Assembly: GCF_963853765.1 (NCBI RefSeq)
Contig: NC_088858.1
Location: forward strand, 30,132,001-30,196,000
Reading direction: 5' to 3'
Length of the DNA: 64,000 nt
DNA from: Magallana gigas
Lineage: Eukaryota
This document shows, piece after piece, positions 527 to 60,890 of this stretch (the stretch's first letter is position 1; each line of letters opens with the position of its first letter). The position numbers and the translations under genes were made by a program. The notes beneath the pieces were generated by a model. The model ran no database searches and was not told where the DNA came from. It saw only the letters and a list, made by a program, of their open reading frames with translations.

Positions 527-594
527 AAACTGTGATCACATTTCCGCATTTTTATACACATGATCACAGAAATATTTCATAAACCAATACTTAC

Positions 595-822
595 CAAATG
601 TATAGTGATCAAGTGACTTGTTAAATGTAAACTTTTCAATGCCAATAGTGAACAGATAATTGCAGGGATCTACAGAGAGATAAGCACTGAAGGACATGTT
701 GAGGTCTGGGACATTGACACAGCAGTGAAATCCTGTACAAAGTGGTGGAAGATAACAGGAAACCAGTGTGGCTGATCTGGCATCTAGAGTACGATTCACC
801 AAATCCACATCCAACTGACACA
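595..822 (-). CDS. Repeat unit R30, first exon only; gene continues beyond the left edge
   Basis: xCQLDVDL...SCYLPPLCTGFHCCVNVPDLNMSFSAYLSVDPCNYLFTIGIEKFTFNKSLDHYTFG|gtaagt. Confidence 0.8.
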
Positions 823-3800
823 CTGAAAAAGTGTTATAAAATGTGCACATGTTGGTAAAACATATCTTTACTAAAGGTTCATTATTAAAAAACAAAACTT
901 AATCTAAAGCCATCAGGGACGGACAATTACCGAATTTTAGGTCTGCTATCAAAGAAGATGTGATAATTAGCATAAAAAGGCACAATCTCATTGATACTTA
1001 TAGTAAACCACTTACTTTGTGATAAATAATAAGAGCTTAATGTGCTGTTGAGAACTCCTTCTGTAGAGTTTGTATAGTTCTGGCCAATCAAACTTTGGTC
1101 AAAGAACATGCCAACACCTCTCTTACATGGAATTGGATTCATATATTGTGCAATGTCCAAATATTCCAATAATAAATTTTTTGCCCATTCAGGAAACTGT
1201 ACCAATGTTGGAACTTTTTCATCACTTTTCCATTTTGATAATGAAAAGCCTATAATTCCATAATCAAAAAACAATTAAAAATATTGAAAAACTTATTAAG
1301 GCAAAAATAATTCATCACTGACTAAAATTTATGCAAAGATTAAAAATGTACCTGTATTAACATCCCAAGGACATCTTCGTTTTGGCAGTAAAGTATTTTC
1401 GAAAATAGAAATCCTCCTTATACAGTCTTCATGCGCTTCAAAGCACAGACTGAGATTCATGTTGACAAGAAAAAACCGTTCTCCTTGGAAATTGTCTATT
1501 ATGAAGCTATAAACATACGAGAATTAAAGAGATTTTCATTTGTCTTCATGAAATATTGTGAACTTTACACAGATAATTGTACAAATGATTGTGAATTATA
1601 ACATTAACCCTATTGCAAAAGTTGTATACTGTGGTCTCATTAATATTCAAGGGTATCAATTTTCGTGGATAAAGTGAAAATCACAGTTTCAAGGATACGT
1701 AAATTTGTGGCCAATGACCCTATCAATACAAAAAGTTAATAGAAATTGCATTTCAATGAATACTTAATTTCGACGATCATCTTAATAACGAAATACACGA
1801 AAATTGGTATTTAACAAATATTGATGAAACCACAGTACTACATGTATGCATATACATATTATCTTACTCTATTCTTACTACTCCAGCAAGCCAGTGCCTT
1901 TCTTTCTGACCTACAAAGAAAAGAGAAAAAATTACAACAATTAATATGTATTATATGAAAACTAAGCAAATCAATTATTGAAAATTTTTGCTGTACCCCA
2001 TCTATAATGAGCAAGTGAAATATTCCTGTTGAATTTTCCTATACCAACTTGGAGTTCAGAAGTACAGGGATCTATGGTAAGGAAGATTTTTACATTTCTA
2101 GTCAGGTATTCTACCCCAACACAACACTCTATAGATGTGCAGTCCTCCTGAAGGTGACATACTGCTCCAGATATGTTTGGTTTAATCACCATCTTTGCAC
2201 AAGCTGCAAATGTATTTTAAAAAATCAAGTCTTTGACTATTATGATGATTTTGGGTATCGAGACAAGGTAAAACTGAATAAATTTTAAACCTTTATCAGG
2301 GCACAAAAGCCCAAATTCATATATAGTCTCAGCAAGTCTTACATGATGTCCAGCCATTAACTGCATTTGAAGATTGACTACATGACTGGGAGAGTAAATA
2401 CTGTGATATTGAAAGTTCATCCATCAGTTGAGACACTTTGTAGTCAGTCTGCATCAGGTCTGACACATTCCCAATACTATTATTTGCTAACCAGGTGGTC
2501 AGAGAGAAGTCTATAAAACAGAAGACAAAAATACATAAATCAATAATGGTTATGTTAAAAAAATTGTTCCATAACAATGCTAGTAGTTCTCAAAATGGCA
2601 AAGATAAATACACCTTTAATTAATAGAAAATGTCACTATACAAATTTGTTTTCCCTTGGACTGAAATGTCACACTTTCATTGGTTTAAACATAGCACGTG
2701 GTTGCCTCATATATCTCTATATTTGTTCTGTGAGGAATAATATTAGGCAATATGGCCGTCATTGGCCGACGCTTCGCTTACTCATTTCGACATTTCATAG
2801 TATTTAATACATAAACCGCATGCCCTAAGTTTTTAAAGTATTTGGAGTAGTTGCCCTTTAAAATTCTTTAAAATTAGAGTAGTTGCCCTTAGAATATTTA
2901 TGTCACATTGTTTTGTCTAGAGCAGAACAAAATGGCAGCGACGAAATTTGCTCAAATCTCTGCAGAGAAAGGGAGAAAACATTTAAAATTGAAAAGCAAC
3001 AAAACATTGTAAGTAAACATGAGTGAATCAAAGATTTTTAAAGAGTATTTGAAAGGTGAGATTGAGATGGAAAATTTTGAAGAGTTTAAATGAGTTAACT
3101 TGGACGAGATGTAGGAATATTGTAAATGGCTTTACGTAGATCATCGCTATTTGTGAATAAATATGTCGCTTGATAGTCCTCGGGAAAAACAAAACACTTA
3201 TTATGTTAGTTCCTGACTCACTACAGAAAATATATTGGGTTGATCCATCTCATAGACGGCTCGGCTCCGCCTCGCCATCTATGAGATAGATCAACACAAT
3301 ATATTTCCATAGTGAGTCAGTAACTAACCTAATAAGTAATAATATTGGTATCTTTGCATTTCGTAGATAAATATTTACATTAAGTGTATACTTCCCCTTA
3401 TGTTTGCATTGGAAATCTGGGACGTTCAATTTTCTATAAATACACTCTGCTAATCCATGCGCCATGAACACAGATAAAAACGTCATTACATGTTTTGGGT
3501 ATATTTATTTTTGTAAGATTAAATGAAACTTTCAATCTTACATAACCAATTTGATATGTACTTTTGAAAAACTATTGTCTAGAGCAAAACAAATATATAA
3601 TATATATAATATATATCTACTCCTTAGTAAAAAAGTTTTTTTATCCGCAAAGTTTCTGGCACATATTTTTTTGTCGCAAAAGCTAACTAAATAATATGTT
3701 AATATGGCTGTTCCATGTATGTTTCATATCCCTGACTAAGAGCACAAATAATGGCTTTAGAGCGGCGATACACAAATTTCATATAAATAGACATCAGTAT

Positions 3801-5939
3801 GAAAATATAAATAAAAGCATCGAATGCTTATTTTTTGATGTAAGCTAACACGCGATATGATAATTTGTCTGCACCACTTGGTTTGTCATAGGACCGACGA
3901 CATTCAAAAATAAGCATTCAATGCTTAAAACAATCATTTTTCACTGTTGATTTTAATTATTATTTGCAAAGTGTACAAAAACGAAGCAATATTGCTTACT
4001 AGGGTCAACAAAACTTTGATTCCATGTGCACAATCCTTTTGGAAAAACTGCCCTGTTCAGAATTGTGTATGTGGTACCAGTGTCACACTGTGGTGGTCTT
4101 GTTTCGTAGCAGTCCATAGCTTCTAGTGACACCAAGTATGATCTATCTTCAAACAAGTCTTCAATGGTGTATCTGAAAGTCACCATACAGTGAGTGCACT
4201 TGTATATTATATACGTTCTTCCGTGGTTAAAATAATTGCAACAATTCCTGCTGGACTAAAGGGGCCCTTCTTTAGCCAGATGATCTGCAAATTTACCAGT
4301 ATCTAATATCCCTTACGATTTTTAAAGCGCTAACCATAGCGCTTTATTGTCGTTAGACTTCTACTTCAGGTGCATCGAATAACTGCCTCCTATGAGCAGA
4401 GGTTTACATAATTTAAACTGGTTAGGGAACCAGTTTTAGGAGTTTGTGCACATAACTGCACGGGCTAATGTGAATCTAATGTACGGGCTATTGTGAATTT
4501 AATGTACGGGGCTTACATACATCACTGCATGGACGTCCACGCAATGATGCGGAAATATATAGTGCGTGTACAAAAGCTGAAATGTTACATACATGTACAT
4601 ATATCTGTTATATACATACTGAAGCTGAGCTATCGCTTTTCAGTACTATCAGTACTTTGATTTCCTCAAGATTTTACCTTCATGCTCCCTGTACAATACC
4701 CTTTCATGTAACCACATATATGTGAAATTAATATATAGTCATTAGTCATAACCACCCCCCCCTCCAGCAGCTTACCTGACTCTATATATTCCAAGCAAAC
4801 TGAACTCCTCAGGTTCTCCTAGAAAGAAACACCCAATTCATATAAAAACTTCAAATTGAAATATTTCATCAAATTGAAATATCATACTTAAATAATAAAT
4901 ACCCAATCTTAAATCATGTAGTGCCTTTGTATAAAACACTTTTTCGATCTGAATAAAAAGGCTCTGGGAACAGTAGTCTATGCTGAAATGTACTTGATAA
5001 TTTCTTCTTAACTCTGGAGATTTGACACAGCACTGCACACCATTACAAGTTGAGAGCATGACACATTTAACATCAGCATGCAGGTTAGGCAAATTCATGA
5101 TCATTCCACAACCTAAGGAATGAAAGTTAGTTAATATTTATCAATAATTTGTACTTTGTAATTAAGAAAGTCAGAAAAATTGTCTTCTTCAAAAACACAT
5201 TCGTTACCACTGGTCCATCCATTGGCAGCTGTAGTTGAATAGATACCAACAGATGTATTACACATTGGGTTATCTGTATAGCCAGCCAGGCCTGTTTCAT
5301 CCATAAGTTGCAACAAATATTCATCTGGAATACTTAGTTTAGCAGTTGGAAGATGTCGATCCACTTTCCATGAAAACAGTGAGAATCCTTAAAAATAAAT
5401 AGATTAAGTTTATTTAAAATCAAGTTGATTAAAGTCTCCTTTAAAGAAGGTGAACTCCTAATTTTATATATAGTAAAATCAATAATCCAATAGAAAAATG
5501 GATGCCCACAAAATATGCACCTTTGATATTGTAATCCATTGACCATTCACAGACATCTTTTGGTATCAAGGAATCTTTAAAGAGGACGTAGAACACTGTG
5601 TCATTTCTACTGGACTCATAACTGTGGCTGATGTTCATGTTCAACAAGTATTTTCTATCATTGAAGAAGTTCACCAAAGAAAAGCTGTTGAAATAAAAAA
5701 TTAAAACAAAAGCATAATAAATATTACCACAAATTTATTATCAGACGAAGTTCTTTTTCATATACTAGTACATTTATTCACAAATTTAAGATTTATGTAA
5801 AAGATTACCTCAATTCATATATCCCATAGAAATCCATTTTCACCACTTCACCTAATAAATTGAGCATACATCATAATTGTGTTTGAAGAGATTGAAATTA
5901 AGCTTTAAATAAAAATATAATTCAATGAAATATACAGTC

Positions 5940-6003
<64 letters not shown>

Positions 6004-6113
6004 AAATCACAAAAGTATTTTCTCAGTGTCCGGTAAAAATATAATAAAAGAAAAAAAGCAACACTAACTGCAAAGCAAATTATGTTTTGCAGTTAGTGTT
6101 GCTTTTTTTCTTT

Positions 6114-6178
<65 letters not shown>

Positions 6179-9100
6179 TGAATGACATACCCCATGTAAA
6201 ATTGAGGAGACTGATGTTGAATTGCAGTTTTTCTATCTCCAACTTCAAGGTGAATTTACAAGGATCAATTTTGACTACCGTTTCTATGTTTCGTTTGAGT
6301 ACTTTGTCTTCCACACAGCAAGAGGTGGTTGTACAAGTGTCAGACAGATAACAGTTGATGAGGTCTGAGTCTGTGAACTGACTGATCCCAGACACCTTTC
6401 CACATTCTGAATAAAAAATCATATTTCTTTTTCATTTCAGTTTAATTTCGGATTGAAACAAAGTAGGTTTATATTTTCATTAACATTAGATATAAAAACA
6501 CACCATCCTTCCAAAAGTTCCTGTGGGGAAAATAGTTTCCTGCTTGTCTATGACAGGAATCTTTAAGATATTCGGGAATATCAAGAACTTCTTGCAGTAA
6601 AACAATGTCTGAGGCTTTCATCTCTGACTCTGTTATTTGGTTTTCTGCTTTCCATGTTGACAGTGAAAAATCTGCCATTATAAAATAAGATTCAAAATTA
6701 GTGAGTTATACCCAGTATATTTGTTTGACGTACCTGCTAATTCATATGTATTTGCAGATTATAAGGAATATGTTTACGTCTTGCTATCAAAAATACTGTT
6801 TGAAAGGTTTCCTTTTGGTTGAGGAATAGCATACTTTTTTGTACAAAACCAGTAATCAAGCTGCAAGGTTTCTTTGGCAACAGAGAATTTTTGAACACCA
6901 CAGTCTCTAACACACAGGGACCAGAGGATTCCAAACACAGACTGATATTTAGGCTCATTTGGTACTTCCGATCAACTTTCAGGTCATACACTTTATACCT
7001 TTAAAAGATATCAAACTTACACTATTTATCTTTAAAAATAAGTATACACTGTACTGTTCATCCACCAAATCAAATTTTTCAATTTGATAATATTTCAAGA
7101 CAAGCAATAGCTGTTATGATTAAATTTTCAAAACTATCATTTTCTATGTATAATTTGCTGGCATATAGTCGCATTGATTGCATTTTCATTAGGAAAAATG
7201 TGTTTTTAAGTGTAACTTTTTAAAAATAATTGAAAACTCACTGCATCCGAACAACATTGTTGAGGAAGAAACTGTGCTCTTTTCCTAAAACATTATATGC
7301 CGTCATTTATAAGAATATTCAAAATATAAATGAACTTACATACAGTATCAAAATCATTGATTTTATTGAAATAATTTTTACATGTATATTCATATAAAAT
7401 CAGCTCTAATTTATAAATCCAAGGAGTTTTATTCTCACCAAATGTGAAGTCATAGAGTGAGATTTGATGAGCAAAGTTTTCAATCTCCAACAAAATCCTC
7501 TGGTTACAGGGATCTAGTTCTAGGAGCACGCTGATTGACCTGTTGAGTGGAGTGTGTGATGTCACACAGCATTTGACTGATGTACAGGTGGCAGGGATGT
7601 GACAAAGCAGGTCTGTGGGTAGATGTCTGGTCAGCACTGGTAGAGGACAGTCTGTAAAGTGAAGCAACACAACATTAGAACATGATACACACCACTGCAC
7701 TCTCTGTCTTTCTCGTTCATATATTTAATCTAAATCTGGTTAAGCATGATTTTTCACACATTTTTGGTAAGAACATATTTGCAGTGATTAATTTTCATTT
7801 GTAATAAGTCTTGTTGCCTAGAGAAAAGAGAACACTGGTTAGTGAGAATACTTAAACATCCATCAGCAGCTTTTCCTCCTAATGTTTTAAATATCTATTG
7901 TATACATCTTTTGGTTCACAGTACAAACCTGCACTGAGCTACTTAAAACATCTTTTCAACAATATAAAATATTGTAAAATTCCATGTAAATAACAATTAA
8001 ACATGTACTGTAAATTAAAACAGAGCTCCAGCTGAAAACTTGCCTTTTGTCCATCCGTGTGTATTATTTTGGTAAATGATATCAGTTTCCCTACATTGTT
8101 CCCCTTTCATATACTGTGCTATTCCCAAATCTTCAAGAAGTTCTAACTGACCATATTCTGGTAATGGCAACACTGATGAAAAACTGTGATCAGCTAACCA
8201 GCCAGACATTGAAAAACCTACAAAACAAAACAAAAAATCCAAAAGATATGAATATCAAACTAGGTATTGAGTTCCCTACATTGTTAATTTAAAATTTAAA
8301 TGTTATGGATTGTAATGATCAGAAATTGTATAAATTTGAAGTAACTTACTTGGGATGACAAAGTCTGTACTCTTGAATTCACAGACAGGTTTCGGAAACA
8401 TAGTGTTTTGAACAATGTTTTCAGTTAGGGTACAATTGTCTGGTTCATAGCACACACTTATATTGACACTCATCATATAATGTGAGTCACTGACCAAGTC
8501 AAAGATGATGTAACTAAAAGAAAATTTACTCATTAGTACCACATATTTGTACATTTGTACATCAATGATGGTAATAGAAAAAATATATTATGTATTTTTA
8601 CCTAATTCTGTAGACTCCTTGAAGACTGAAATGCTTTTCTTCACCTTTAAATGTGTTTACATAGATTATATAATTACTTGTAATTATAATTCTCGAAAAA
8701 ATAAATAAATATAGTTTTCAACTTTAATAATTTATGATTTAATATAAAGAATTATAAAAATATCAAAATGTTTTATTACCAAATGTAAAGTCCAAGAGAA
8801 ATGATTGTTGTTTTCTGTTCTCTATGCCTACTGAAAATTTTAAATGACAAGAATCTACACCAATGAACCAGTTGAATGTTGTATCCATTTCAGGATCTTC
8901 GGTACAACAGTTGATAGAGGTACAGCTGGAACCCACATAGCAGTAGGTCTTCTTCTTCATGTTGTAAGGTAGACTGCGTATTCTACATGCTAGAAATTCA
9001 AAAAGCACTTTAATGAGTAAATAAAATTGCAGAATGATCTTGTACATTTTATAAACAATAAGGTTTTATGGTATGTTCTAACTTGCAACTTCTTTTAAAT

Positions 9101-12100
9101 AGGATCAGTGCACAATAGCTATAAATTGAGAAAAAATCTATCACCATTGTGTTGATTCCAGCCATTGTATGTGGGCCAGTATGGGGAAACATTTCTTCTA
9201 CACTTAGATGACTTGAGATATCCAGGCAGTTTTAAGGAGTCTTCTACTTTACCCTTCATATAGTTAGGTAAATTGGCACCATAACTGTAACTGTTGTTAA
9301 TTTTCCATGATAAAAGGGAAAAACCTATTAAAAAAGGAATAATTTAAACATGTATCTGTGAAAGCTTAAACAAATTAGTCAGATATTTAACTCTTTCATT
9401 TATTTCCACATTCATAGTTATTTAGAGCGTGTAAAAAGCAACAATAATATTTGAATTGTCGACTGCATATATTAAGACATCTTCTGTGTAACATTAGGTG
9501 GTGTTGGCAACATAAAAATTCTCATTGTTCAGTTTGAAATAAGTGAAAAATCTCAAGACGGGGGTAAATATCATAAAATCGACCAACAATTATATAGCTA
9601 TGATTAAATATAAAAATATGTTATCAAACCTGGTGGCAATAGCTGATCAAACTGGCATTTTCTTTTGGACACAAGGCTGTTGGCAAGTATTGTCTGATTA
9701 GCAATTTCACATGCTTTCGAACTCTCTGTACACAAGCTTACATTTACATTTAACACATATTGGTGTTCATGTTGGAGATTTTTTACATCAAAACTACAAG
9801 GAAATGTAACCAAAGTTAGAATATGATGACAACAATAATCATAATCTCAATCATGGAGAAAAAAAGTTTTTAAAATCTAGAACTTACTCCATGCGTACAA
9901 CTCCTTGTAACCATACACTTTTTGTCATGGCTTAATGAAGAAAAAAATATCAAGTTGAAAATATATGAAACATTCGCAACTAAGCAATTTTTCATAGGCA
10001 TTGTAAAATTTAACATACTCATGCAAATTTTGGATTTGCTATACATACATGTTGACAGCAATTTGTCTGTTTCAAGAGAGATTTCCTCAAATTTCCATTT
10101 ATCAATTCCAACCACTATTTTTGATGTGCAAGGGTCAATTTCTAGGTATGTATGGAAGCTTCTCCCCAAAACTGAGCTTGATATACAACACTCTACTCCT
10201 GAACAATAACTAGGAATATTGCAGGTAAAAGAGCTGGGGAGGATTGGCAATGCAAGGTTGTCTAAGCATTCTGAAAAAAAAATCATCACATGAGCATACA
10301 ATCATATATACGTATCTTAAAAACTTCACTGTAATTCAAAACATTTGAGAACTTTGTAAATTTCCTTTTTTTAAACTTGCCTGATGTCCAACCAGTGCTG
10401 TTTCCATGAACCCAAGATGTGTTACAGTCTGTATCCTTAAACTTTGACAGCTGTAAAACTTCCATTAGATCCTGCAGAGCACTTCCTGTCAGTGGAGTAG
10501 TGTTAGGATATCCATTTTCTGACAGCCAAGTACTGGTAGAGAACCCTTAAAACAAATCATACACATTTACAACACCTTGATTTATGGAATAACATATTTA
10601 ATGAATATGTAATAATAGTTGAATATTTGTTTGCAATTGTTTAAAAATATAACAGACATTAAGTCAAGAAAGGTAAAACCTGGCAGTAAAAGAACATATT
10701 ACATCAATATGTTTGTAGCAATATATTAATTTCAAACAATACATCAAAAGAAATCTTACATGCATAATATACACATCACTTATACATGTATATCAACAAA
10801 CTACACAGATTTTTTCAATTTTACACACTCTGTGAACAATTGTCTCTTACCAGGTATTGTTTCTTCTGCTTTCCAGTTGCAGTAAGGTTGGGATCTGGAC
10901 TTTGGTAATCTTGTATTCGAGAGAACTGTGTATTGTTCACAGTGTAAGGAACTCTCCCAGCAGGAGAGGACGGAGAAGCTGACTAGGTACATGTTGGCAT
11001 TACTCAGGTCCTCAATTGTATATCTGTAGAAAACAGTTTGGGAAGGATATAAATATAACAAAATGAAAGAAAAAGTGAACAAGCTCACATACGCCATGCT
11101 CCCATATTATTGGCAATCCTATAATGAAAGACAGAGTATGCAATAAACACACAAAATGATTTTATTTTAAAAGGGACATAACTCAATAAAAAATAATGAC
11201 ATCAAGACTTCCTGCACATCTATACTTCTGTCTCTATAAAACAACAACAAAATTTTAAATTCGAAAATGCAAAAATTCCCATAAAATTGTAAAATCGGAA
11301 TTTTCTGGTACATATATGTAATATGCACATCCTAAATACCTACAAAGTTTAAACAAAATTCAGTGCAACAGTTTAAGAGGAGCCGCGTTTACTAAACACA
11401 GGACAGAAGGACTGACACACTGACACAATGACTGACTGACGGACGGGTCAAAAACATATCCTTCGCACTTGTTGTGTGATGTATCTTTATGGAAATGGAG
11501 TACAAAATATAAATCCAAATCTATTTTCAATGATGTACATCATATTTACCTGAGATGATATATTCCACTCATAGTAAGCATTTCTTCCTTTCCTATGAAG
11601 AAATTTATTCAATTAAGAAAAGTAATGAATAGCATTTTAAATATTATTTTCTGGATTTCTAAAGATTTTTCAAAATACAAATACATCTATACAAATGTAC
11701 TTTATACAGTGAACGTATACTGTTTAAATCAAACAAATATTTAGTTCTACTTTGAAACTGAAAAATAACAGTCAAAGAACACACCCTTACCCCAGTTAGT
11801 GTATGCACTTGGCTGTATTTCTCTGACAAACTTGTCTATGCCTATCCTTATTTTGTCTTGACAGTAGTTTAGACTGAAGTGAATGGTCACATGTTTCAGC
11901 AAAGGTTCAGAATACAAACAGCACACCACATCTGAACAGGAGTGTCCAAGATTACAGGTGATAGCTCCTCGAATAACAGGAACATTGTTTGGGAGGGATA
12001 CTGGGCAATCTTTTCAAAACAGAAAATAACAGAAATCATTCTAATTCTTTAAATTCCTGATTAAAATTCTCGGAAAAACTGTAAAATGTAGTGGTAAGTT

Positions 12101-34242: not shown

Positions 34243-34339
<97 letters not shown>

Positions 34340-55300: not shown

Positions 55301-58300
55301 AGCAATATTAAAAAGATCATATAGATATGAATTTCAATACATTCTATTTTGACTGTTTTTTTTATAATTTCCCTTTTGAAAACGATGTAACTCTTCATTT
55401 CAATTAAGGTTAGATCTAGAGAATAAAATGTACCTACAGGTTTATGAAATGAACGATATATATTCTTTCAATGATGCTTCATACACTGTAACAATATCTC
55501 TGTTTTATGGGATGTATATCGGTTCAACGGGGCATGGTCATGATTTTGGTTAAATTTATTCTATTTTTCTGTTTATATTGTTTACAATGCTTTAGCAATG
55601 CATTTTTATTGATCATTCCAAATTTGAGTGTCAGTCATAGAGATATAAGCAAGATACGGAGCTTACAATTAATTGTTATGTTAATAAGGCTCGTTCCTTC
55701 TTTTTGCTTAAATTGGTTCAATATACCGGTAAAAAATCTTCTTTAAGCTGACTTCTTCGTTTTGAATATAAATGAACATTTCTTAGCGTTTATCACTTTC
55801 ATTTTACATGCATGTCTAAACCTGGAATTTTCTGATCAACACTCAAAATGTAAACAAAAACTTTGTTTTCCCAAAGAATAATTGTGAGTTCTATATCTCG
55901 TTTATAACTCAACTACCGACACTCAAACTTTTGTTGACTTTTATAGATTTCTTACTGAAGAATATAACATTTACAAGTTTTTATTTGTAGTCCATGAGCC
56001 ACATCGCTCACATGAAAAACGTTAACAGTTCATTGTATCATTTTAATTAAGTTTTCTAATATTTTCCAAATTTATTTCAAAGTTATACATTGAACCCCTC
56101 ATAGGGCCCCATTATTAGTCTAGGATCACAATTTCAAAAATTTAGACTCTACCTTATTTAAGAATGCTTACATAGCAATTGTAGCATTGTAGTTCTTGAG
56201 AATAAGATTTTAAAACATTTTTTCCATATATTTCTATTTAAAAACTTTGAACCTCTCTTGAGTTCCCAAGTATTAGTCCGTGGTTTACAATTTCAGCCAT
56301 TCAAAATCTCCATTCTTTGAGAATGATGGCATAGCAATCTCAAAAGTTGTAGAATTGTAGTTCTTAAGAAAATATTTCTAAAATTTACTTTAAATTTTTT
56401 CTAGCACCGTATGTTAAATTTTGAACCACTCTTGGGCCCCAGTATTAGTTCAGGGGTCACAGTTTGAACAATTTATAATATACATTATTTTAAGGGTACA
56501 TGTAATTTTGCACTATTTCAGAAAATGCAACTGAAAACTCGATTGTACATGCCCCATTTACAATCACACTTACCCTTCTTTTAAGATATCATAGGCATCT
56601 TTAACAGACTTGATTATGTTGAAGACCTTTCCATATCTGTTAATAAATGTATCTGCCATTCCAATTAAACCACTAAACGGCTCCATTAGCTCTTTTTCAA
56701 TTGTTTCTAATAAATTCACTGCCTCTTGTTTCATGCTTTGCTGAAAAAAATGTATGATGCATAAAATAAATATTTTATATTCTATTAACAAAAATAACAA
56801 GCTTGATGATTTGTTAAAAGAGTAATAAATACAGTTGAGATTTTTCCCTTTGAGAACTTCTTCACAACATCTTCTCCCTCTTCCAACTTTTCATGAACCC
56901 ACTTTTGACCAGCTGTCTTCATACTATGAAATGCTTTGGTTGCTAAGTCAGTGTACTCAGATATCAGAGCTGCCACATCAAACCAATACGGCTTGTCATC
57001 TGTTTAATGTAAAAAATCAAATAAATATTTCATATAAAAACAAATTGCTGCACCAGCAGTAACCTTTTATTATTTAATATTTACCAACAGAAATAAGTTA
57101 TCAAAGTAACTCAAGTGATCTACGAATTGCATATTTTACTGTACCTGTATGGTCATATTTATCAAATACACACCCTAATAATACACGCACGCATGAACCT
57201 CAAACCCGTGTCAATTTTACAATTTAAGGAGAGGACATCACAGACATGTTAACAATAAATTTTGTCAATATCCAATAACTATGAAAGTAAAGAAAATATT
57301 ATTAATTTTTATACATTTTTACTACAATGTATGTGCCCATATTGGCCCTATCCAAGACCCAGAGGTCTTGAAATTTACAAATTATATAAATGGCTTCACA
57401 GACATCACAATCACGCATCTAGATTTCCTTAAATATATATTGGAGTTAAAAAGGATATTTTCTAAGATATAATTTAGATTTAATGATATTTCATTCAGAA
57501 TTTAGTAATATTTCAGAGCTTGACCCCCTGACTAAGGGGCAATTAATTTCGCAATTTGGGTAGAGATTTGGATAGAGAATTTATTTTTTAAAAATAATTT
57601 TGCTGTTTGTTTTTCCAAAATGTATATGGCAGAAGAGAGGGTATTTAACATTTTTAAATGCATGTTGACTAAATGGCCCAATTGACCCGCGCCTAAACTA
57701 ACAAAGACCAAATACAATAGATCACATGAGTTGATATATAATTTCAATAATTAAGCACAATGCGATATATATTCGATAAATACCATTTCTTAAAAAAAAA
57801 CCCCGTTTTTTAAAACGCTAATTTCATATAATTCAATTCTAAGAAATTCATGCCCGCCTCGAATGAATGAGTAAGCCATACTTTTCTCTTTGGCTTAATG
57901 CATCGTTTAAAATTCCCGGATCAATGACGCATAAGCGACATTTTAGTACAATGTATTTTACCATGGAAATATGCAATACTTTCAAATATACTGCTAATGA
58001 TTTGTTGCATGCGCATTTTTATTGTGATATGCCAATATATAAACACTATGCCTAGTAGCAACATTGCTCACCTGAGTCACATTGACCAACATTCTAATTA
58101 CTTTGGAATCATCATTGTTAGCACGGTGCCAATGTTCAAGGCTTTCGTTGGTCACCCTTTTCTTATAAATTTACATCCCCACACATATTTTAATTTGTAA
58201 AAAATTTGACCCTCATGGTGGCTCAACCCTACCCCAGGGATCATGATTTAAACAACTTTGAATATATACACTACCTGAGGATGCTTCCACACACGTTTCA

Positions 58301-60890
58301 GGTTTCCTGACTGAAAACTTTCAGAGAAGCTTTTTTAAAAAAAGATTTACGCTATATTTTACTATTTAAAAATTCGACCCCCGTTGGGACCCCACCCTAC
58401 TCTCGAGGGTCATGATTTTCACAACTTTCATTATTTTCACAACTTTGAGTTTACACTATCGGAGGATTCTTCTACACAAGTGTTTGCTTTCCTGGCCAAT
58501 TGGTTTCTGAGAAGATTTTTGAAAAGTTCTAAAAATATTTTAATAATTATTAATTATCTCCCCTTGAAAAAAGTGTATTCCTTAATGTTCACAACTTTGC
58601 ATCTCCTTTTCTTAAGGACGCTTTGTACCAAATTGGTAGAAATTGGCCGAATGGTTCTTAAGACGATGTTGAAAATGTGCAAAGTTTACAGACAGACAAA
58701 ATGTGATCAGAAAAGCTCACTTAAGGACGCTGGATTTTGTGATCAAAAGTCTTTAATTTTTTTCTAAAGTGTTTTTTTAAAACATACACACATAGCTTAA
58801 CCAATATCCAAAACAAGATTTTGGGGTCTATATGCTCCTTTCGGTGCTACAATGTATTTAATATGACCTTTCTGCACTGAAAGTGCAAATTGCACATAAA
58901 TCACTTTTCCATCTGAAATTTTTATCGGAATAAACCATGGCATCAAACAAAAGTTTGTTTATACTATTTAAAAAAAAATAAAATCAAAGAAGATGGGGGG
59001 GGGGGGAATAAGATAGCGCAAATTCCCATTCAGTTTAGTCGTAAAATTCAATTTTGTATTTATTTTTTTCAATTGAATCTATTCAAATATATTTTAATTC
59101 AAGCTTGCAAAGCACAATTCCTTACTATATTCAGTTTTTAATATATTTAACAAAAGATAAGAAAAAAATATTGCCTTAAATTTCTGTGGTATCGAACCCA
59201 TAACATAAAAACCCTAGATGTATAAGGTTATGTCGGGTGCTCTAAGCAATGAGCCATTTCGGACACAACAGAGTAGCGTGTTTTATATACTATGTGTCAC
59301 TTTGGTCTCGAATTTACGCACTTGTATTATTTTTTTAAAACGTTGAATTGTTGGGATACACAATTATATTTCTAATGTATAGTGGGTCAACTCTCCACGT
59401 TTTTGTTGATTGAAATCGGTTTGTTTTCCATTAGACCTTATTTAGGCTATGAGAAAAACATGGAGCACAGACCCACTCGATATAAGAAAATGCCTTGAAG
59501 TTCAAAAAATGACACTATTTGCAGGCTTTGATACGCATACGCCTGTTTGAGTCAACACATTCCCGGTATTGAACATACAAGTTAAAAATCATTGAATGTT
59601 AAATATATATTGTTTTAAATGATATTTTAAGAAATACCAGATTGATTTGATATTTTAATTTTTCAGTATCTTGTCCGACAGTGCATGAGCATTTTACACG
59701 CCTTATCCACCCATCTTCTTCACATAAGAAAAACATTTGCAATCTCTTTACCTTATTCATATTTTGACCTTTTTGCACTGATAAAATGCTATTCTTAGTA
59801 ATTAATGATTCAAAATGCAATAAAATTATTTAAAAGTCTCAACCTTTTTCTCAAATGATAATAGATTTGTCAGAAAAATCTTAAAAGGTAAGAAAATAAA
59901 ACCAGCGCTTATCATCACCGCAATTAAAGGGGTTACTTAAAAGAGAAGCTAGCTGTGTTTTGTTTTATCTCTCATACGTTGTCTTAAAGCATCAGTGCTT
60001 GCGAATCTGAAGAAAAAAATTATGGGTCTATGATGTAAACTTTGATATGGCATGAAATAAGCTAATTTTAGGCAAAAATTGGAGTTAATTTTTTCTTGAC
60101 TTTTATGAAATATCAGTTTAATATGTTAATATATGTCAATATAAATATAACAATATCGTTAAAATATGTGTTCCAAAACAGCATGACAATATCCCAAATG
60201 CACAAACTATCTGTAATAAATATGTAATTTTCCCTTAACTATTTTATTCAATATAGTTTATTTGGCATTGCAAAAATATTAATATACAAGTAGAATTAAT
60301 ATATGATGCATAATACAAGGCTAGAGGTGACACAAAATGGCTACCAACCCCCCTCCCCCGAGGAACGAACCGCTTTAAGCTTTCGGCTCAGGTGAGCTAA
60401 AAAGACTTTTGCATTCTGCGTTATTACATTTCTCATTCATCTCAATGTAGTAGGTTCCAACACAAGATGTAGGTAAATTCAATATAGTTTATCACATATT
60501 GTGTTGTTTTATGTCGCAACAATTCTACATTGATTGTATTGACATTACTGTTGCATATAGTAAACAAAACGAACCTCTTAGAAAGAAACAAGCATCTTGA
60601 ATTTTGTCTTTCTGCTCAAGGACGATTTTCACTGCTTGATAAATCCTAATAAAAGAACATATTATATTGTTTCAGAAATACTGAAAACTTTATGTGGCAA
60701 TGATAATTTTGTTGATCCTCTTTAACATAAAAATCATACAAACATACTTGAAAATACTTCCTCCAATTTTCAACAATGCTTCTTTGGGATTTTTCAATAG
60801 TATTTTAAAGCCGTCAATAATATCTTTCACTGCATCAAACACTGCTTTTCCTTGTTGTGGAATGACAACTTTAATAGTTTGCTCAATTTC
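595..60890 (-). CDS. Giant multi-exon gene (~118 exons, ~6,300 aa in window, partial): helical region + M23/LECT2-like domain + 2 SAP-like motifs + 30 tandem Cys-rich ~200-aa modules
   Basis: Manual splicing gives a continuous stop-free frame. Introns are GT-AG (two GC-AG) with matching phases. The exon pattern recurs with lengths mod 3 consistent at every junction. Confidence 0.9.
1016..2203 (-). CDS. Repeat unit R29
   Basis: Exons 1997-2203, 1868-1910, 1352-1506, 1016-1249 (extended; donor inferred from A|gtaagt). Confidence 0.8.
2343..5112 (-). CDS. Repeat unit R28
   Basis: Exons 4903-5112, 4776-4818, 4000-4172, 2343-2510. Confidence 0.85.
3239..3295. repeat. Hairpin (21-bp arms) within a larger interspersed element (~2690-3300)
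   Basis: TTGATCCATCTCATAGACGGC ... GCCATCTATGAGATAGATCAA, 2 mismatches. Confidence 0.7.
3815..3926. mobile_element. Small inverted-repeat element
   Basis: AAGCATCGAATGCTTATTTTTTGATG ... CATTCAAAAATAAGCATTCAATGCTT. Confidence 0.55.
5208..6406 (-). CDS. Repeat unit R27 (lacks C7 and C8)
   Basis: Exons 6191-6406, 5809-5851, 5521-5684, 5208-5387. Confidence 0.85.
5942..6001. repeat. (AT)n microsatellite
   Basis: About 30 perfect units. Confidence 0.98.
6040..6120. repeat. Perfect 35-bp-arm inverted repeat
   Basis: TATAATAAAAGAAAAAAAGCAACACTAACTGCAAA (6040-6074) and its exact reverse complement (6086-6120). Confidence 0.9.
6117..6175. repeat. (TA)n microsatellite
   Basis: About 29 units; produces the spurious IYIYIY tail in ORF 6093-6422. 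Confidence 0.98.
6504..7651 (-). CDS. Repeat unit R26
   Basis: Exons 7439-7651, 7242-7284, 6835-6998, 6504-6671. Confidence 0.85.
8044..8989 (-). CDS. Repeat unit R25
   Basis: Exons 8780-8989, 8602-8644, 8350-8513, 8044-8217 (GC donor). Confidence 0.85.
9145..10270 (-). CDS. Repeat unit R24
   Basis: Exons 10049-10270, 9888-9930, 9630-9793, 9145-9324. Confidence 0.8.
10381..12009 (-). CDS. Repeat unit R23
   Basis: Exons 11791-12009, 11550-11592, 10851-11023, 10381-10545 (GC donor). Confidence 0.85.
11150..11482 (+). mobile_element. HINE-like element remnant with ACTG/ACGG microsatellite
   Basis: aagggacataactc... body ending gactgacacactgacacaatgactgactgacggacgggtcaaaaaca; boundaries approximate. 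Confidence 0.5.
12158..13172 (-). CDS. Repeat unit R22 (3 exons)
   Basis: Exons 12908-13172, 12465-12625, 12158-12328. Confidence 0.85.
13234..13558. mobile_element. TTAA-flanked MITE (Kolobok-like non-autonomous) carrying a tRNA-like segment
   Basis: TTAA|GGTGGTATGGGACA ... TGTCCCATACCACT|TTAA terminal inverted repeats. Minus-strand A box (TAGCGCAGTGG) and B box (GTTCGAATCC) at 13381-13452. Confidence 0.7.
13621..15107 (-). CDS. Repeat unit R21
   Basis: Exons 14895-15107, 14560-14602, 14066-14229, 13621-13791. Confidence 0.85.
15261..16193 (-). CDS. Repeat unit R20 (3 exons; lacks C6 and C9)
   Basis: Exons 15935-16193, 15529-15692, 15261-15431. Confidence 0.85.
16316..17209 (-). CDS. Repeat unit R19 (3 exons)
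   Basis: Exons 16948-17209, 16697-16866, 16316-16489. Confidence 0.85.
17575..18437 (-). CDS. Repeat unit R18 (3 exons)
   Basis: Exons 18185-18437, 17864-18027, 17575-17751. Confidence 0.85.
18590..19815 (-). CDS. Repeat unit R17 (3 exons)
   Basis: Exons 19560-19815, 18860-19017, 18590-18763. Confidence 0.85.
19899..21063 (-). CDS. Repeat unit R16 (3 exons)
   Basis: Exons 20802-21063, 20366-20538, 19899-20081. Confidence 0.85.
21243..22120 (-). CDS. Repeat unit R15 (3 exons)
   Basis: Exons 21856-22120, 21574-21737, 21243-21422. Confidence 0.85.
22374..23771 (-). CDS. Repeat unit R14 (3 exons)
   Basis: Exons 23519-23771, 22813-22979, 22374-22544. Confidence 0.85.
22590..22803. repeat. Intronic tandem duplication (~115 bp x2)
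   Basis: ttttcagaagaat...ttatctta(a/g)gt(a/t)agtgctgatattgaagacttaaaa occurs at ~22621 and ~22736. Confidence 0.8.
23200..23357 (+). mobile_element. HINE-like 3' end
   Basis: (GAC)n microsatellite, AAGCTCTTTTGAGCTT palindrome, GGCTCAGGTGAGCTAAAA; the same end recurs at ~60380-60403. Confidence 0.55.
23861..24841 (-). CDS. Repeat unit R13 (3 exons)
   Basis: Exons 24592-24841, 24309-24475, 23861-24025. Confidence 0.85.
25183..26100 (-). CDS. Repeat unit R12 (3 exons)
   Basis: Exons 25845-26100, 25474-25643, 25183-25341. Confidence 0.85.
26223..27364 (-). CDS. Repeat unit R11
   Basis: Exons 27146-27364, 26977-27019, 26590-26750, 26223-26399. Confidence 0.85.
27495..29030 (-). CDS. Repeat unit R10
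   Basis: Exons 28821-29030, 28629-28671, 27772-27941, 27495-27671. Confidence 0.85.
29178..31266 (-). CDS. Repeat unit R9
   Basis: Exons 31045-31266, 30781-30823, 29929-30086, 29178-29351; possible extra 30-nt exon 30143-30172. Confidence 0.85.
31389..32356 (-). CDS. Repeat unit R8
   Basis: Exons 32138-32356, 31959-32001, 31695-31846, 31389-31577. Confidence 0.85.
32570..33320 (-). CDS. Repeat unit R7 (3 exons)
   Basis: Exons 33065-33320, 32822-32979, 32570-32734. Confidence 0.85.
33446..34548 (-). CDS. Repeat unit R6
   Basis: Exons 34339-34548, 34108-34150, 33832-33995, 33446-33619. Confidence 0.85.
34246..34334. repeat. (TA)n microsatellite
   Basis: About 44 units starting a few nt after the R6 splice donor. 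Confidence 0.98.
34691..35675 (-). CDS. Repeat unit R5
   Basis: Exons 35454-35675, 35300-35342, 35026-35186, 34691-34873. Confidence 0.85.
35778..37791 (-). CDS. Repeat unit R4 (3 exons; lacks C6 and C9)
   Basis: Exons 37530-37791, 37117-37268, 35778-35951. Confidence 0.85.
36117..36397. mobile_element. Degenerate second copy of the TTAA-flanked tRNA-containing MITE
   Basis: TTAAGATGGTATGGAACACC left end; internal ggaaaggtaaaaat..cccgacaggattcaaactcat..gctacactgttagg matches 13360-13455. Confidence 0.6.
36398..36610 (+). mobile_element. 3' tail fragment of an RTE-like non-LTR retrotransposon
   Basis: Translates to ...TALSWTSEGRRKEGRPK...(stop)...AAADKSRWRRSVDAL..., resembling the WTPEGxRxRGRPK...DRxxWRxxVxAL C-terminus of RTE-clade ORF2. 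Confidence 0.6.
38217..39362 (-). CDS. Repeat unit R3
   Basis: Exons 39111-39362, 38910-38964, 38644-38816, 38217-38390. Confidence 0.85.
39558..44921 (-). CDS. Repeat unit R2 (divergent)
   Basis: Exons 44673-44921, 44233-44275, 40634-40779, 40449-40540, 39558-39603. Confidence 0.75.
45521..47245 (-). CDS. Repeat unit R1 (divergent) plus linker with SAP-like motif 2
   Basis: Exons 47024-47245, 46861-46927, 46545-46708, 45786-45913, 45521-45662 (MTDGQIKAALMSRNLPQTGDRATLNSRLLQ). Confidence 0.8.
47379..47517 (-). CDS. Exon with SAP-like motif 1
   Basis: ELIENKPCVSPHEMTEDQLMNELIERGKDASGSREEMLARLLELEQ; tag acceptor and gtatgt donor. Confidence 0.75.
47701..48406 (-). CDS. Acidic/Pro/Thr-rich linker and helical segment (3 exons)
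   Basis: Exons 48259-48406, 47961-48116 (PVTTTTTVAPS), 47701-47888 (FFAKLLKAADKFLQKFNIRRLKFGTIIEFLDKLG). Phases 0-1, 1-1, 1-0. The acceptor at 47888 is weak. Confidence 0.7.
49089..52714 (-). CDS. Peptidase M23 / LECT2-like zinc domain (3 exons)
   Basis: Exons 52528-52714, 49414-49560, 49089-49262 give ...KHVGVDILVESGKT-IVAPFAGEVT...QAGQKLGTSKHSICKNHIHLAFHKDDDYIDPTKYL. This contains HxxxD, the G-x-x-V-x-A-P-x-x-G motif, GQxLG, HxH and DP..YL. Confidence 0.85.
51898..52011. mobile_element. 114-bp hairpin MITE
   Basis: TAGTCTCGTTCAACCAGACGCTCGGCTGTCTCCGT ... ACGGAGACAGCCGAGCGTTTGGTTGAACGAGGCTA, 2 mismatches in 35 bp. Confidence 0.8.
52781..53380 (+). mobile_element. HINE-like element with ~160-170 bp satellite monomers (about 3 copies)
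   Basis: AACAAGAGGCCCATGGGCCACATCGC head. The monomer tt(g)aacccc..tattagt..caatt..gtagcattgtagttctt recurs at ~52883, 53044, 53204. Confidence 0.65.
53595..54450. repeat. Two clusters of degenerate TGATATC-core short repeats
   Basis: (t)tttgatatcaaaaa / ttctgatat units at ~53595-53720 and ~54195-54450. Confidence 0.6.
55985..56500 (+). mobile_element. HINE-like element with the same ~165 bp satellite (about 3 copies)
   Basis: gtccatgagccacatcgctcacatg head; monomers at ~56090, 56245, 56420. Confidence 0.65.
56574..60890 (-). CDS. N-terminal amphipathic helical region (4 exons)
   Basis: Exons 60748-60890, 59978-60006 (29 nt), 56833-56999, 56574-56740 join in frame: EIEQTIKVVIPQQGKAVFDAVKDIIDGFKILLKNPKEALLKIGGSIFK-FASTDALRQ-HDKPYWFDVAALISEY...GKVFNIIKSVKDAYDILKEG. 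The donor at 56833 is weak (gtattt). Confidence 0.75.
58055..58720 (+). mobile_element. HINE-like element with Cg170-like satellite monomers
   Basis: ATTGCTCACCTGAG 5' subTIR; monomers ccctaccccagggatcatgattt..ctacctgaggatgcttccacac (~58225, ~58395); tgtgatcagaaaagctcactt end. Confidence 0.6.

Follow-up and report, generated by a model that had tools for sequence, protein, structure and literature searches.

The 64,000-nucleotide stretch of Magallana gigas DNA that we analysed (contig NC_088858.1, positions 30,132,001 to 30,196,000; hereafter the window) carries dozens of short open frames on its minus strand. We examined whether these are exons of one gene, and found that they are: the window holds the middle of a gene of about 126 kb whose product is estimated at about 11,800 residues. 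All coordinates are those of the window, and values above 64,000 or below zero lie beyond its high and low ends. The features within the window are as follows.

60693..60893 (-), exon of the helical region between the large lipid transfer protein (LLTP) head and the M23 domain; an open frame that aligns to aa 820-878 of Potamilus orthologue P0004, to aa 818-893 of Branchiostoma orthologue P0155 and to the start of orthologue P0020.
56573..57003 (-), two further helical-region exons (about 56836-56988 and 56573-56752) just upstream of the M23 domain, found by tblastn with P0004 aa 897-1004; AlphaFold models the equivalent stretch of P0004 as a long helix leading into M23.
52528..52714 (-), M23 exon 1, carrying GSGEY...HVGVD (the H-x3-D zinc motif), defined by AG/GT boundaries and translation and conserved in all five oyster paralogues.
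49414..49560 (-), M23 exon 2, carrying APFAG and YITNIE, where Asn replaces the LytM-His260-type catalytic His; RNA joint 49262|49414.
49089..49262 (-), M23 exon 3, carrying NHIHLAF (HxH motif) and the conserved CDDYKL; RNA joints on both sides, and five genomic copies, one per paralogue.
47701..48406 (-), three linker exons (48259-48406, 47961-48116, 47701-47852) with RNA joints: an acidic, Pro/Thr-rich stretch including TTTTT, then a helical segment; the 101-aa linker has 14 D, 10 P and 9 T.
47379..47517 (-), SAP motif 1; Pfam SAP 20.4 bits, E 3.9e-4, below the 23.9 cut-off, although the orthologous position scores above the cut-off in other species.
46545..47245 (-), repeat unit 1: B exon 47024-47245, 67-nt micro-exon 46861-46927, C exon 46545-46708; all joints seen in RNA, with HMM hits.
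45786..45913 (-), helical linker exon between unit 1 and SAP 2; RNA joint 45913|46545, plus matching loose ends that define the intron 45663-45785.
45521..45662 (-), SAP motif 2; Pfam SAP 24.4 bits against the 23.9 cut-off, RNA joint 44921|45521.
44673..44921 (-), B exon of repeat unit 2; HMM hit, acceptor joint seen in RNA, donor GT at 44672-44671.
587..40808 (-), the rest of the array inside the window: the C exon of unit 2, unit 3 (B, C), then 26 complete (A, B, C) units plus the A and B exons of the next unit, so B exons 3 to 30; about half of the B>C joins pass through a micro-exon.

We first asked whether the repeat exons form an ordered array. Regular-expression classification of the exons proved too strict, and iterative HMMs seeded from one module were used instead. 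These found 27 A, 30 B and 29 C exon-type open frames on the minus strand of the window (E 1e-11 to 1e-47 across the rest of the array) and none on the plus strand, in the strict order (B C)x3 then (A B C)xn. The first-pass annotation had counted 30 units, and this count is correct for the window. The whole array, however, has 34 B units, 4 of them left of the window.

Next, we examined whether the M23 and repeat exons belong to separate transcripts, an outcome that had been named beforehand as one that would overturn the single-gene reading. RNA contigs from three runs, plus stranded raw reads for most joints with first mates only on the plus strand, show canonical GT..AG joints on the minus strand. 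These chain the twelve exons from 49414-49560 to 44673-44921 listed above, that is M23 exons 2 and 3, linker, SAP 1, the first repeat unit, SAP 2 and the second unit's B exon. Of these, the 45662|45786 joint was inferred from matching loose ends. Adding M23 exon 1, which was joined from sequence (one contig runs 233 letters beyond exon 2), gives an open frame of 691 aa without a stop.

Direct two-exon joins for B>C failed in many units. RNA showed a micro-exon in unit 1, and allowing micro-exons and GC donors solved all junctions. The resulting homology-guided splice model of the whole array has 118 exons and reads 6,510 aa with 0 stops, and all 63 C>A, A>B and C>B joins are phase 1. The model missed the RNA-defined B1 donor by 18 nt and the C1 acceptor by 6 nt, both in frame, so individual boundaries in the array are approximate. 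About 5,780 aa of the array lie in the window, and the earlier figure of more than 6,300 aa for the window is therefore about right. Scans of intronic ORFs and an Rfam scan found no nested gene or RNA family. Together, the results show that the original observation of one minus-strand gene that splices without stops, in the order helical region, M23, linker, SAP and modules, is confirmed.

What could not be seen from the window alone is that the gene runs off both of its ends and is about twice as large as first described. It starts about 30 kb beyond the high end, with the ATG at +94,085, a signal peptide and a Vitellogenin_N (LLTP) head. After 34 repeat units it continues about 24 kb past the low end through PAN, FN3, Ig-like and EGF domains to one transmembrane (TM) helix, whose exon lies near -31,800. 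The locus is collinear with the Haliotis orthologue P0156 (7,549 aa) from aa 23 (+94,025) to aa 7,339 (-31,795). The oyster's own sequence gives the signal peptide MGTQSAWYLTILLVLPIALEVQS and, after an EGF-like stretch, the TM helix WMVALIAVLVVVAVVALIVFAVV followed by the basic stop-transfer RYKIKKR. PAN_1 passes the cut-off on the oyster's own exon. A hydropathy scan of the Haliotis, Lottia, Amphiura and Gigantopelta orthologues likewise finds one TM candidate about 200 aa from the C-terminus. Thus the protein has the features of a type I single-pass membrane protein, as judged from sequence and hydropathy. No single RNA molecule spanning head, array and tail was seen, and continuity beyond 44,600-49,560 rests on orthologous gene models and on the same order in five paralogues.

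The Vitellogenin_N domain (PF01347) scores 31.7-48.3 bits in orthologues against a cut-off of 24. The oyster exons, each too short to score alone, are collinear with that part of P0004 at 53-62% identity. The nearest named clusters in the atlas searched are vitellogenin/MTP, with a score of 0.89. Pfam scans of five orthologues detected none of the lipid-cavity beta-sheet domains (Vit_open_b-sht, DUF1081, DUF1943, MTP_lip_bd) after the helical part, and an atlas look-up of the 590-985 region returned no recognisable relatives. Lipid binding by this head is accordingly unproven.

We then examined the M23 domain (PF01551; MEROPS M23). Single oyster exons gave nothing against Pfam or PDB sequences, and neither did a six-frame genome search with PF01551; since the domain is split over three exons, this says nothing against M23. 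Orthologues P0020 (31.1 bits) and P0156 (32.5 bits) pass the 28.7 Pfam cut-off, whereas others score 19.6-25.3 bits. An AlphaFold model of the orthologous domain (P0004, residues 985-1205, core pLDDT about 90) gave 60 PDB hits at E <= 1e-3, and all listed hits are M23/LytM domains, confirming the fold.

The zinc ligands are present in oysters. H-x-G-x-D is kept in all five oyster paralogues (HVGVD in this gene), and HIH in the four whose fetched locus covered that exon. Across the family only the Asp of the first motif is invariant: its His is lost in most non-oyster orthologues and is N, I, D, R or Y in Haliotis, Lottia, Amphiura, Branchiostoma and several bivalves. In the HxH motif, the second His is invariant in the family and the first is His in all but Lottia and one Mytilus paralogue. 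In contrast, the catalytic His about 30 aa before HxH (LytM His260 type; PMC9662197) is Asn in this gene and in all five paralogues, and nearly invariant Asn across the family. This equivalence rests on an HMMER alignment to SpoIIQ and on the M23 consensus, not on superposed coordinates. The same review states that LECT2 lacks a catalytic His and that degenerate M23 folds act in protein-protein interaction. With one of the two catalytic histidines Asn family-wide, as in LECT2, the domain is probably a binding domain rather than an enzyme. As oysters keep the full zinc triad and the first His of HxH, residual or altered catalysis cannot be excluded.

Both SAP motifs (PF02037) are present, and orthologues reach 45.1 bits with two stretches. 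They lie between a signal peptide and a TM helix and are flanked by conserved Cys (PC...C), and so are topologically extracellular, as inferred from topology. SAP motifs are normally nuclear DNA-binding elements, and their role outside the cell is unexplained. We also considered whether the A segment is a degenerate SAP motif, but hhalign gave a probability of only 0.4%.

The repeat module is about 200 aa long with 10 conserved Cys, and 27 of 30 full modules have exactly 10. Its AlphaFold model is confident (pLDDT 92, pTM 0.87), yet the module matches no Pfam family and no solved structure. Foldseek against the PDB gave a best E of 0.075, and VIA-align over 48,161 chains gave FAIM-NTD at Z 6.7, inside the tool's stated noise range. 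N-glycosylation sequons are enriched (84 against 56.6 +/- 7.2). The modules are old and diverged, with a mean identity of 29% and no homogenisation.

The oyster has five full paralogues. The three arrays examined each have 30 A, 34 B and 33 C exons, with module i matching module i at all 34 positions. Across phyla, positional orthology of modules holds only for units 1-3. Orthologues of 5,900-7,950 aa exist in gastropods, bivalves, sea stars, a brittle star and amphioxus, and every database name is "uncharacterized". Literature searches by locus tags, gene IDs and domain combinations found no description, in agreement with the first-pass annotation, which knew of none for this architecture.

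Reading from the N-terminus, the protein has a signal peptide, a Vitellogenin_N-type LLTP head, a helical region, a degenerate M23 (LytM/LECT2-type) domain, an acidic, Thr-rich linker, two SAP motifs each followed by a B-C unit, a third B-C unit, 30 complete A-B-C modules and a final partial B unit (34 B exons in all), about 3,900 aa of PAN, FN3, Ig-like and EGF domains, one TM helix and a cytoplasmic tail. Our analysis establishes the exon structure, the domain content, the membrane anchor, conservation in three phyla and the five oyster paralogues. Everything that concerns function, including cell type, localisation, ligand, binding and catalysis, is inferred from domain precedents.

We favor, with moderate confidence, a model in which the gene encodes a single-pass cell-surface glycoprotein. 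In this view the 10-Cys modules and the membrane-proximal beta domains form a long, disulfide-braced stalk, possibly a few hundred nm long by estimate, that holds the LLTP and M23 head far above the membrane of an epithelial or other exposed cell. The M23 domain would act as a zinc-holding binding module rather than a peptidase, as LECT2 and the bacterial degenerate LytM domains do. The head would capture a ligand, most plausibly microbial cell-wall or lipid material, and the fixed, position-specific array would set the reach or offer further binding sites.

The interpretation first offered for this locus, a very large secreted or matrix protein presenting an M23 domain on a long modular arm, is thus only partly supported. 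The single giant gene, the M23 fold, both SAP motifs and the long disulfide-rich arm all hold. However, the protein is not simply secreted, the LLTP head at the true N-terminus is as much a defining feature as the M23 domain, the term "enzyme head" is doubtful, and specific kinship to LECT2 is weak.

Among the alternatives, a shed or secreted scaffold or carrier of mucus, haemolymph, shell or egg matrix, close to that first interpretation, survives best but is unlikely. The ectodomain is huge, modular and disulfide-rich, with enriched sequons and a Thr-rich linker; many giant membrane mucins are shed; and a weak Pfam hit to the Epiglycanin_C "cleavage site, TM and tail" model falls on the last exon (E 0.028). 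On the other hand, the TM helix and cytoplasmic tail are conserved from oyster to sea stars, which argues for a function at the membrane, no SEA, GPS or furin-type cleavage module was detected, and the strict position-specific conservation of the array is unlike low-complexity mucin repeats.

A gamete-recognition or egg-coat protein, analogous to abalone VERL or sea-urchin EBR1 (giant repeat-array proteins of broadcast spawners), is less likely still. The family is so far seen only in marine broadcast-spawning groups (molluscs, echinoderms and amphioxus), and has a giant repeat array, lineage-specific repeat numbers of 12 versus 34 and multiple paralogues. However, its modules are diverged and position-conserved between paralogues, whereas VERL repeats are generally described as homogenised by concerted evolution, and Pfam scans found no ZP, CUB or TSP domains.

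Equally doubtful is an active antibacterial peptidoglycan hydrolase displayed on a stalk to cut bacterial cell walls at the animal's surface. Retention of the zinc motifs in oyster paralogues, the closeness of the fold to LytM and lysostaphin, and the fact that M23 enzymes are mostly peptidoglycan hydrolases (PMC9662197) speak for it. Against it stand the Asn at the second catalytic His and the degenerate status given to LECT2 in the same review. The first zinc ligand varies among orthologues, so catalysis cannot be the conserved family function. The best sequence match in the PDB is the non-catalytic SpoIIQ LytM domain.

A membrane-tethered lipid-binding or lipid-transfer protein, in which the head loads or senses lipid at the cell surface and the rest is an anchor, is very unlikely. 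The Vitellogenin_N head is conserved in three phyla with both its beta-barrel and helical parts, and its nearest named atlas clusters are vitellogenin/MTP, but the absence of detected lipid-cavity domains counts against this reading, which also does not explain the M23, SAP or 34-module array. Finally, an artefact in which neighboring LLTP, M23, repeat and TM genes are wrongly read as one can all but be dismissed: although no single RNA record spans head, array and tail and several database models are partial or split, RNA joints link M23 to SAP to the repeats, the same order recurs in five oyster paralogues and in independent full-length gene models from gastropods, sea stars, a brittle star and amphioxus, and only 1.9 kb separates the last repeat exon from the first tail exon.

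A bolder possibility, which we consider unlikely but which our data do not rule out, is that this is a fourth, membrane-anchored branch of the LLTP superfamily that arose before protostomes and deuterostomes diverged, its head pairing a vitellogenin-type module with a LECT2-like M23 domain and its stalk built from a fold not yet seen in any solved structure. Vertebrate LECT2 could then be the surviving remnant of this gene's M23 domain, and the five paralogues, with fixed 34-unit position-specific arrays, could form a surface recognition system for microbes or for self/partner cells.

If our main reading is right, marine invertebrates from three phyla share a conserved giant surface protein that nobody has studied. 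It would join two domain types with known microbe- and lipid-binding precedents, the vitellogenin-type LLTP and an M23/LECT2-type fold, to an undescribed disulfide-rich module of about 200 aa and to extracellular SAP motifs. It would add a membrane-anchored class to the LLTP superfamily, offer a candidate ancestor context for vertebrate LECT2, and define a new domain family for Pfam and structural biology. It would also give oyster biology five genes of about 10,000-12,000 aa to examine for roles in the epithelial barrier, immunity or cell adhesion, and a clean case for asking whether repeat number in giant surface proteins acts as a molecular ruler.

The closest systems are the uncharacterised orthologues Haliotis rufescens LOC124111176 (7,549 aa), Lottia gigantea LOTGIDRAFT_236952 (7,473 aa), Gigantopelta aegis LOC121390363, Asterias rubens LOC117298318/LOC117298529, those of Patiria, Acanthaster and Amphiura, and Branchiostoma LOC109464305. 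They share the domain order of signal peptide, Vitellogenin_N, M23, SAP x2, B/C and A-B-C modules, PAN, FN3, Big_9/cadherin-like, EGF and TM, and the Haliotis protein is 40-60% identical to the oyster locus outside the array. Of those examined, Haliotis, Lottia and Amphiura have 12 B modules and Branchiostoma at least 13, against 34 here; most lack the first zinc-ligand His that oysters keep, and none has any functional annotation.

DUF4773 (PF15998) proteins of arthropods and others give recurrent weak structural hits to the B+C beta body (Foldseek E about 1e-3, TM 0.3-0.45; atlas TM 0.39). We rejected this assignment at the sequence level, as 0 of 92 modules match PF15998 at E <= 10 and a six-frame genome search with PF15998 finds other oyster loci but none of the five giant genes.

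LECT2 (vertebrate leukocyte cell-derived chemotaxin 2; PDB 5B0H) is likewise an animal M23-fold domain that has the zinc motifs but lacks a catalytic His, and its GxGxY...H-x-GVD...APF-G segment aligns. LECT2 is, however, a free secreted protein of about 133 aa, whereas here the domain is internal to a giant membrane protein. Searching PDB sequences with the family profile gave LECT2 at E 0.004 over the N-terminal half only, and Foldseek ranks it 36th (TM 0.61, 21% identity). This similarity is no better than that to bacterial LytM domains, and orthology is unproven. Among the bacterial degenerate LytM domains (EnvC, NlpD, SpoIIQ, Csd2), which have an incomplete catalytic set used for binding rather than hydrolysis, SpoIIQ is the best PDB sequence hit (E 1e-4) and Csd2, LytM and EnvC are top fold hits; these are bacterial cell-envelope proteins, of entirely different domain context and organism.

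Large lipid transfer proteins (vitellogenin, apoB/apolipophorin, MTP) share the signal peptide followed by a Vitellogenin_N domain with beta-barrel and helical parts. The oyster protein has no detectable lipid-cavity beta-sheet domains and no vWD, is membrane-anchored, and carries M23, SAP and a giant repeat array, an architecture that is not known from any described LLTP class. Giant repeat-array surface proteins (abalone VERL, sea-urchin EBR1, membrane mucins such as MUC16) resemble it, by analogy only, in a very large ectodomain built from tandem modules, a single membrane anchor and a lineage-specific repeat number. The repeat domain itself is unrelated, as no ZP-N, CUB/TSP or SEA was found in the Pfam scans, and the repeats here are old, diverged and position-specific.

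The 64-kb window is AT-rich (about 32% G+C) and lies at positions 30132001-30196000 of contig C6 of the 564-Mb oyster assembly (G000). Stop-to-stop open frames on the minus strand show a three-part repeat, whose parts we denote A, B and C. HMMs grown from one unit find 27 A, 30 B and 29 C exon-type frames on the minus strand and none on the plus strand, in the strict order (B C)x3 followed by (A B C)xn. Upstream of them lie frames that carry the M23 motifs and a Pfam SAP hit (24.4 bits against a 23.9 cut-off). The observation made in the first-pass annotation, including its count of 30 units, is therefore correct for the window. Its interpretation, a very large secreted or matrix protein presenting an M23 domain on a long modular arm, is partly supported. 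Positions 1-529 of the window hold a dispersed repeat of about 580 bp, possibly a MITE or SINE, which is intronic here and has at least 45 further copies at 78-86% identity on all large scaffolds.

We next examined whether the M23 and repeat exons belong to separate genes, which the first-pass annotation had named as a finding that would refute its reading. Three RNA contig sets and one stranded poly-A raw-read run were aligned to window 44601-50600, so that about 5 kb of the gene was checked against RNA. Every intron in that stretch is supported by a CT..AC joint on the plus strand, which is GT..AG on the minus strand, at similar depth in all three contig sets. Most joints are also seen in the raw reads, whose first mates lie only on the plus strand over the exons, as expected for a minus-strand RNA. 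One joint, between 45662 and 45786, was inferred from matching loose ends. The joints chain M23 exon 2, M23 exon 3, three linker exons, SAP 1, the first B exon, a 67-nt micro-exon, the first C exon, a helical linker exon, SAP 2 and the second B exon. With M23 exon 1 joined from sequence (one contig runs 233 letters past exon 2 toward it), and with boundaries corrected for the stated cut offsets, the translation is a 691-aa open frame. Thus, separate M23 and repeat genes are not what the RNA shows. The intron between the SAP 2 exon and the second B exon holds a high-copy element at about 44943-45155, where RNA contig depth is 10-30 times that of the exons and lies on both strands, most reads being only 90-95% alike with many loose ends.

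Simple two-exon joins failed for many B>C junctions, and the RNA-defined micro-exon explained why. Allowing one micro-exon and GC donors, and choosing among stop-free candidates by a module HMM plus splice-site strength, gives 118 exons and 19,530 nt, which is 6,510 aa with no stop. All 30 C>A, 30 A>B and 3 C>B joins are phase 1, whereas of the B>C joins 12 are direct (phase 2) and 21 go through a micro-exon. The model reproduces the RNA micro-exon exactly but misses two neighbouring boundaries by 18 and 6 nt, both in frame, so single boundaries are approximate; it also omits the 90 aa of the linker and SAP 2 exons between units 1 and 2. About 5,780 aa of the array lie in the window. Micro-exons of about 40-70 nt, at 46861-46927 and as predicted equivalents in 20 other units, encode the last strand-like stretch of the B part in about two thirds of the units. 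In the other units the same residues are fused to the B exon, so intron presence varies among otherwise equivalent repeats. AT-rich microsatellites that translate as IYIYIY (about 5855-6255 and about 34220-34300) lie directly downstream of two B exons, at the position where a micro-exon intron begins.

The gene is much larger than the window. The repeat continues 7.4 kb past the low end with four more B exons, giving 34 in all. A B-exon profile searched against 1.84 billion representative proteins found 877 matches, of which the top multi-repeat hits are bivalve and amphioxus proteins, all "hypothetical". Their N-terminal parts carry Vitellogenin_N, HEAT_2, Peptidase_M23 and SAP. Longer searches found proteins of 5,900-7,950 aa in Haliotis, Lottia, Gigantopelta, Amphiura, Acanthaster, Asterias, Patiria and Mya, plus shorter or partial models including one from another oyster. 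Freshwater mussels also have several paralogues (Potamilus streckersoni and Sinanodonta woodiana proteins, here P0001, P0004, P0005, P0020, P0151 and P0152), and many database models are fragments of one gene split into neighbouring entries, for example ACJMK2_008558 and ACJMK2_008560. The full-length proteins examined have a signal peptide and one TM helix about 200 aa from the C-terminus, and between the repeats and the anchor they have PAN, FN3, Big_9/cadherin-like and EGF-like domains. The oyster locus is collinear with the Haliotis protein (P0156) from aa 23 (window +94,025) to aa 7,339 (window -31,795). Its own sequence gives the start MGTQSAWYLTILLVLPIALEVQS followed by RF (ATG at +94,085), as well as an EGF-like stretch followed by WMVALIAVLVVVAVVALIVFAVV and RYKIKKR; signal peptide and TM helix were judged from sequence. 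Furthermore, PAN_1 passes the Pfam cut-off on an oyster exon. Adding about 1,330 aa before the first unit, about 6,600 aa of array and about 3,870 aa of tail gives roughly 11,800 aa in a gene of about 126 kb, a total estimated from collinearity rather than from a finished model.

Single M23 exons of the oyster are too short for Pfam or phmmer, and the fold and Pfam evidence comes from orthologues, of which P0020 and the Haliotis protein P0156 pass the Pfam cut-off. An AlphaFold model of the Potamilus domain (core pLDDT about 90) finds 60 PDB structures at E <= 1e-3, all M23/LytM domains, with LECT2 at rank 36 (TM 0.61, 21% identity). By sequence profile the nearest solved chains are the non-catalytic SpoIIQ LytM domain (E 1e-4) and LECT2 (E 0.004). 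The defining features of the family are H(x)nD and HxH motifs plus a further His about 30 residues before HxH (LytM His260); LECT2 lacks a catalytic His, and degenerate M23 folds serve in protein interaction (PMC9662197). The gene in the window has HVGVD and NHIHLAF, but the His260-type position is Asn (YITNIE), an equivalence that rests on sequence alignment. All five oyster paralogues keep H-x3-D and the Asn, and HIH is present in the four whose retrieved locus covered that exon. Across the family the Asp and the second His are invariant and the Asn nearly so, whereas the first zinc ligand is replaced in most non-oyster members. We read the domain as a zinc-holding binding module, a role inferred from sequence and predicted fold alone, as is any lack of catalysis.

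Of the two SAP motifs, SAP 2 passes Pfam and SAP 1 falls just short (20.4 bits), while orthologues score up to 45 bits with two stretches. In all species the motifs are framed by conserved Cys (PC...MTDxQL...RGL...G.R...C) directly before B units 1 and 2. By topology they are extracellular, which is unusual for SAP and unexplained. We also considered whether the A segment that precedes units 4 to 33 is a diverged SAP, and an hhalign probability of 0.4% ruled this out.

An alignment of 92 repeat modules from 12 proteins has 11 invariant or nearly invariant Cys columns. AlphaFold, run on orthologue sequence, predicts, with pLDDT 92 and pTM 0.87, two short helices (A) packed on a body of about ten strands (B + C). 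In the oyster, 30 full modules average 198.5 aa and 27 of them have exactly 10 Cys. N-glycosylation sequons are enriched, with 84 observed against 56.6 +/- 7.2 in shuffles. No Pfam model matches any of the 92 modules. Foldseek finds nothing in the PDB (best E 0.075), and the best match of an exhaustive structural aligner (FAIM-NTD, Z 6.7) is within that method's noise range. The module is thus an undescribed domain family, although these searches do not establish that its fold is truly new. AFDB and the ESM atlas return family members first and, below those, weak DUF4773 hits, which have no sequence support. Exons matching Pfam DUF4773 above its cut-off were found at three other places in the oyster genome and are unrelated in sequence to the giant genes:
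C8:36619805-36628132, DUF4773 match
C5:31571460-31572007, DUF4773 match
C10:1357195-1357380, DUF4773 match

The genome holds five loci of the family, the one on C6, two on C9 and two on C3, and each has a Vitellogenin_N exon, M23 exons, a long B array and a tail exon in the same order. The four full paralogues each span 74-135 kb between the marker exons, and the members of each pair, one pair on C9 and one on C3, lie within 0.2-0.5 Mb of each other:
C9:2660314-2795336, full paralogue
C9:2973316-3078491, full paralogue
C3:27618914-27693278, full paralogue
C3:28063952-28150756, full paralogue
Three arrays were compared. Each has exactly 30 A, 34 B and 33 C exons, and module i of the C6 gene best matches module i of each paralogue at all 34 positions, with clear margins at nearly all. 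Within a gene the modules share only 29% identity, and adjacent modules are no more alike than distant ones. The 34-unit array therefore predates the duplications, has not been homogenised, and is conserved in length and position. Haliotis, Lottia and Amphiura have 12 B units and amphioxus at least 13, and only units 1-3 keep positional orthology across phyla.

Together the data show a signal peptide, a very large Cys-rich and sequon-rich ectodomain, one TM helix, a cytoplasmic tail and conservation across three phyla. From these we infer, without evidence on expression site, localisation or activity, a cell-surface protein whose stalk would hold an LLTP + M23 head far from the membrane, where it would bind a ligand. 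Microbial cell-wall or lipid material is the most plausible ligand, given what vitellogenins, LECT2 and LytM domains are known to bind (PMC9662197 and general background). A shed matrix or mucus scaffold, a gamete-recognition protein, an active lytic enzyme and a tethered lipid-transfer protein are not excluded as alternatives. A gene-fusion artefact is, in practice, excluded.

Gene models of the family exist in public databases, but all are "uncharacterized", and full-text literature searches found no description. Giant modular animal surface proteins are known. What appears undescribed is the combination of an LLTP head, an M23 domain, extracellular SAP motifs and a module absent from Pfam, all on a membrane anchor.
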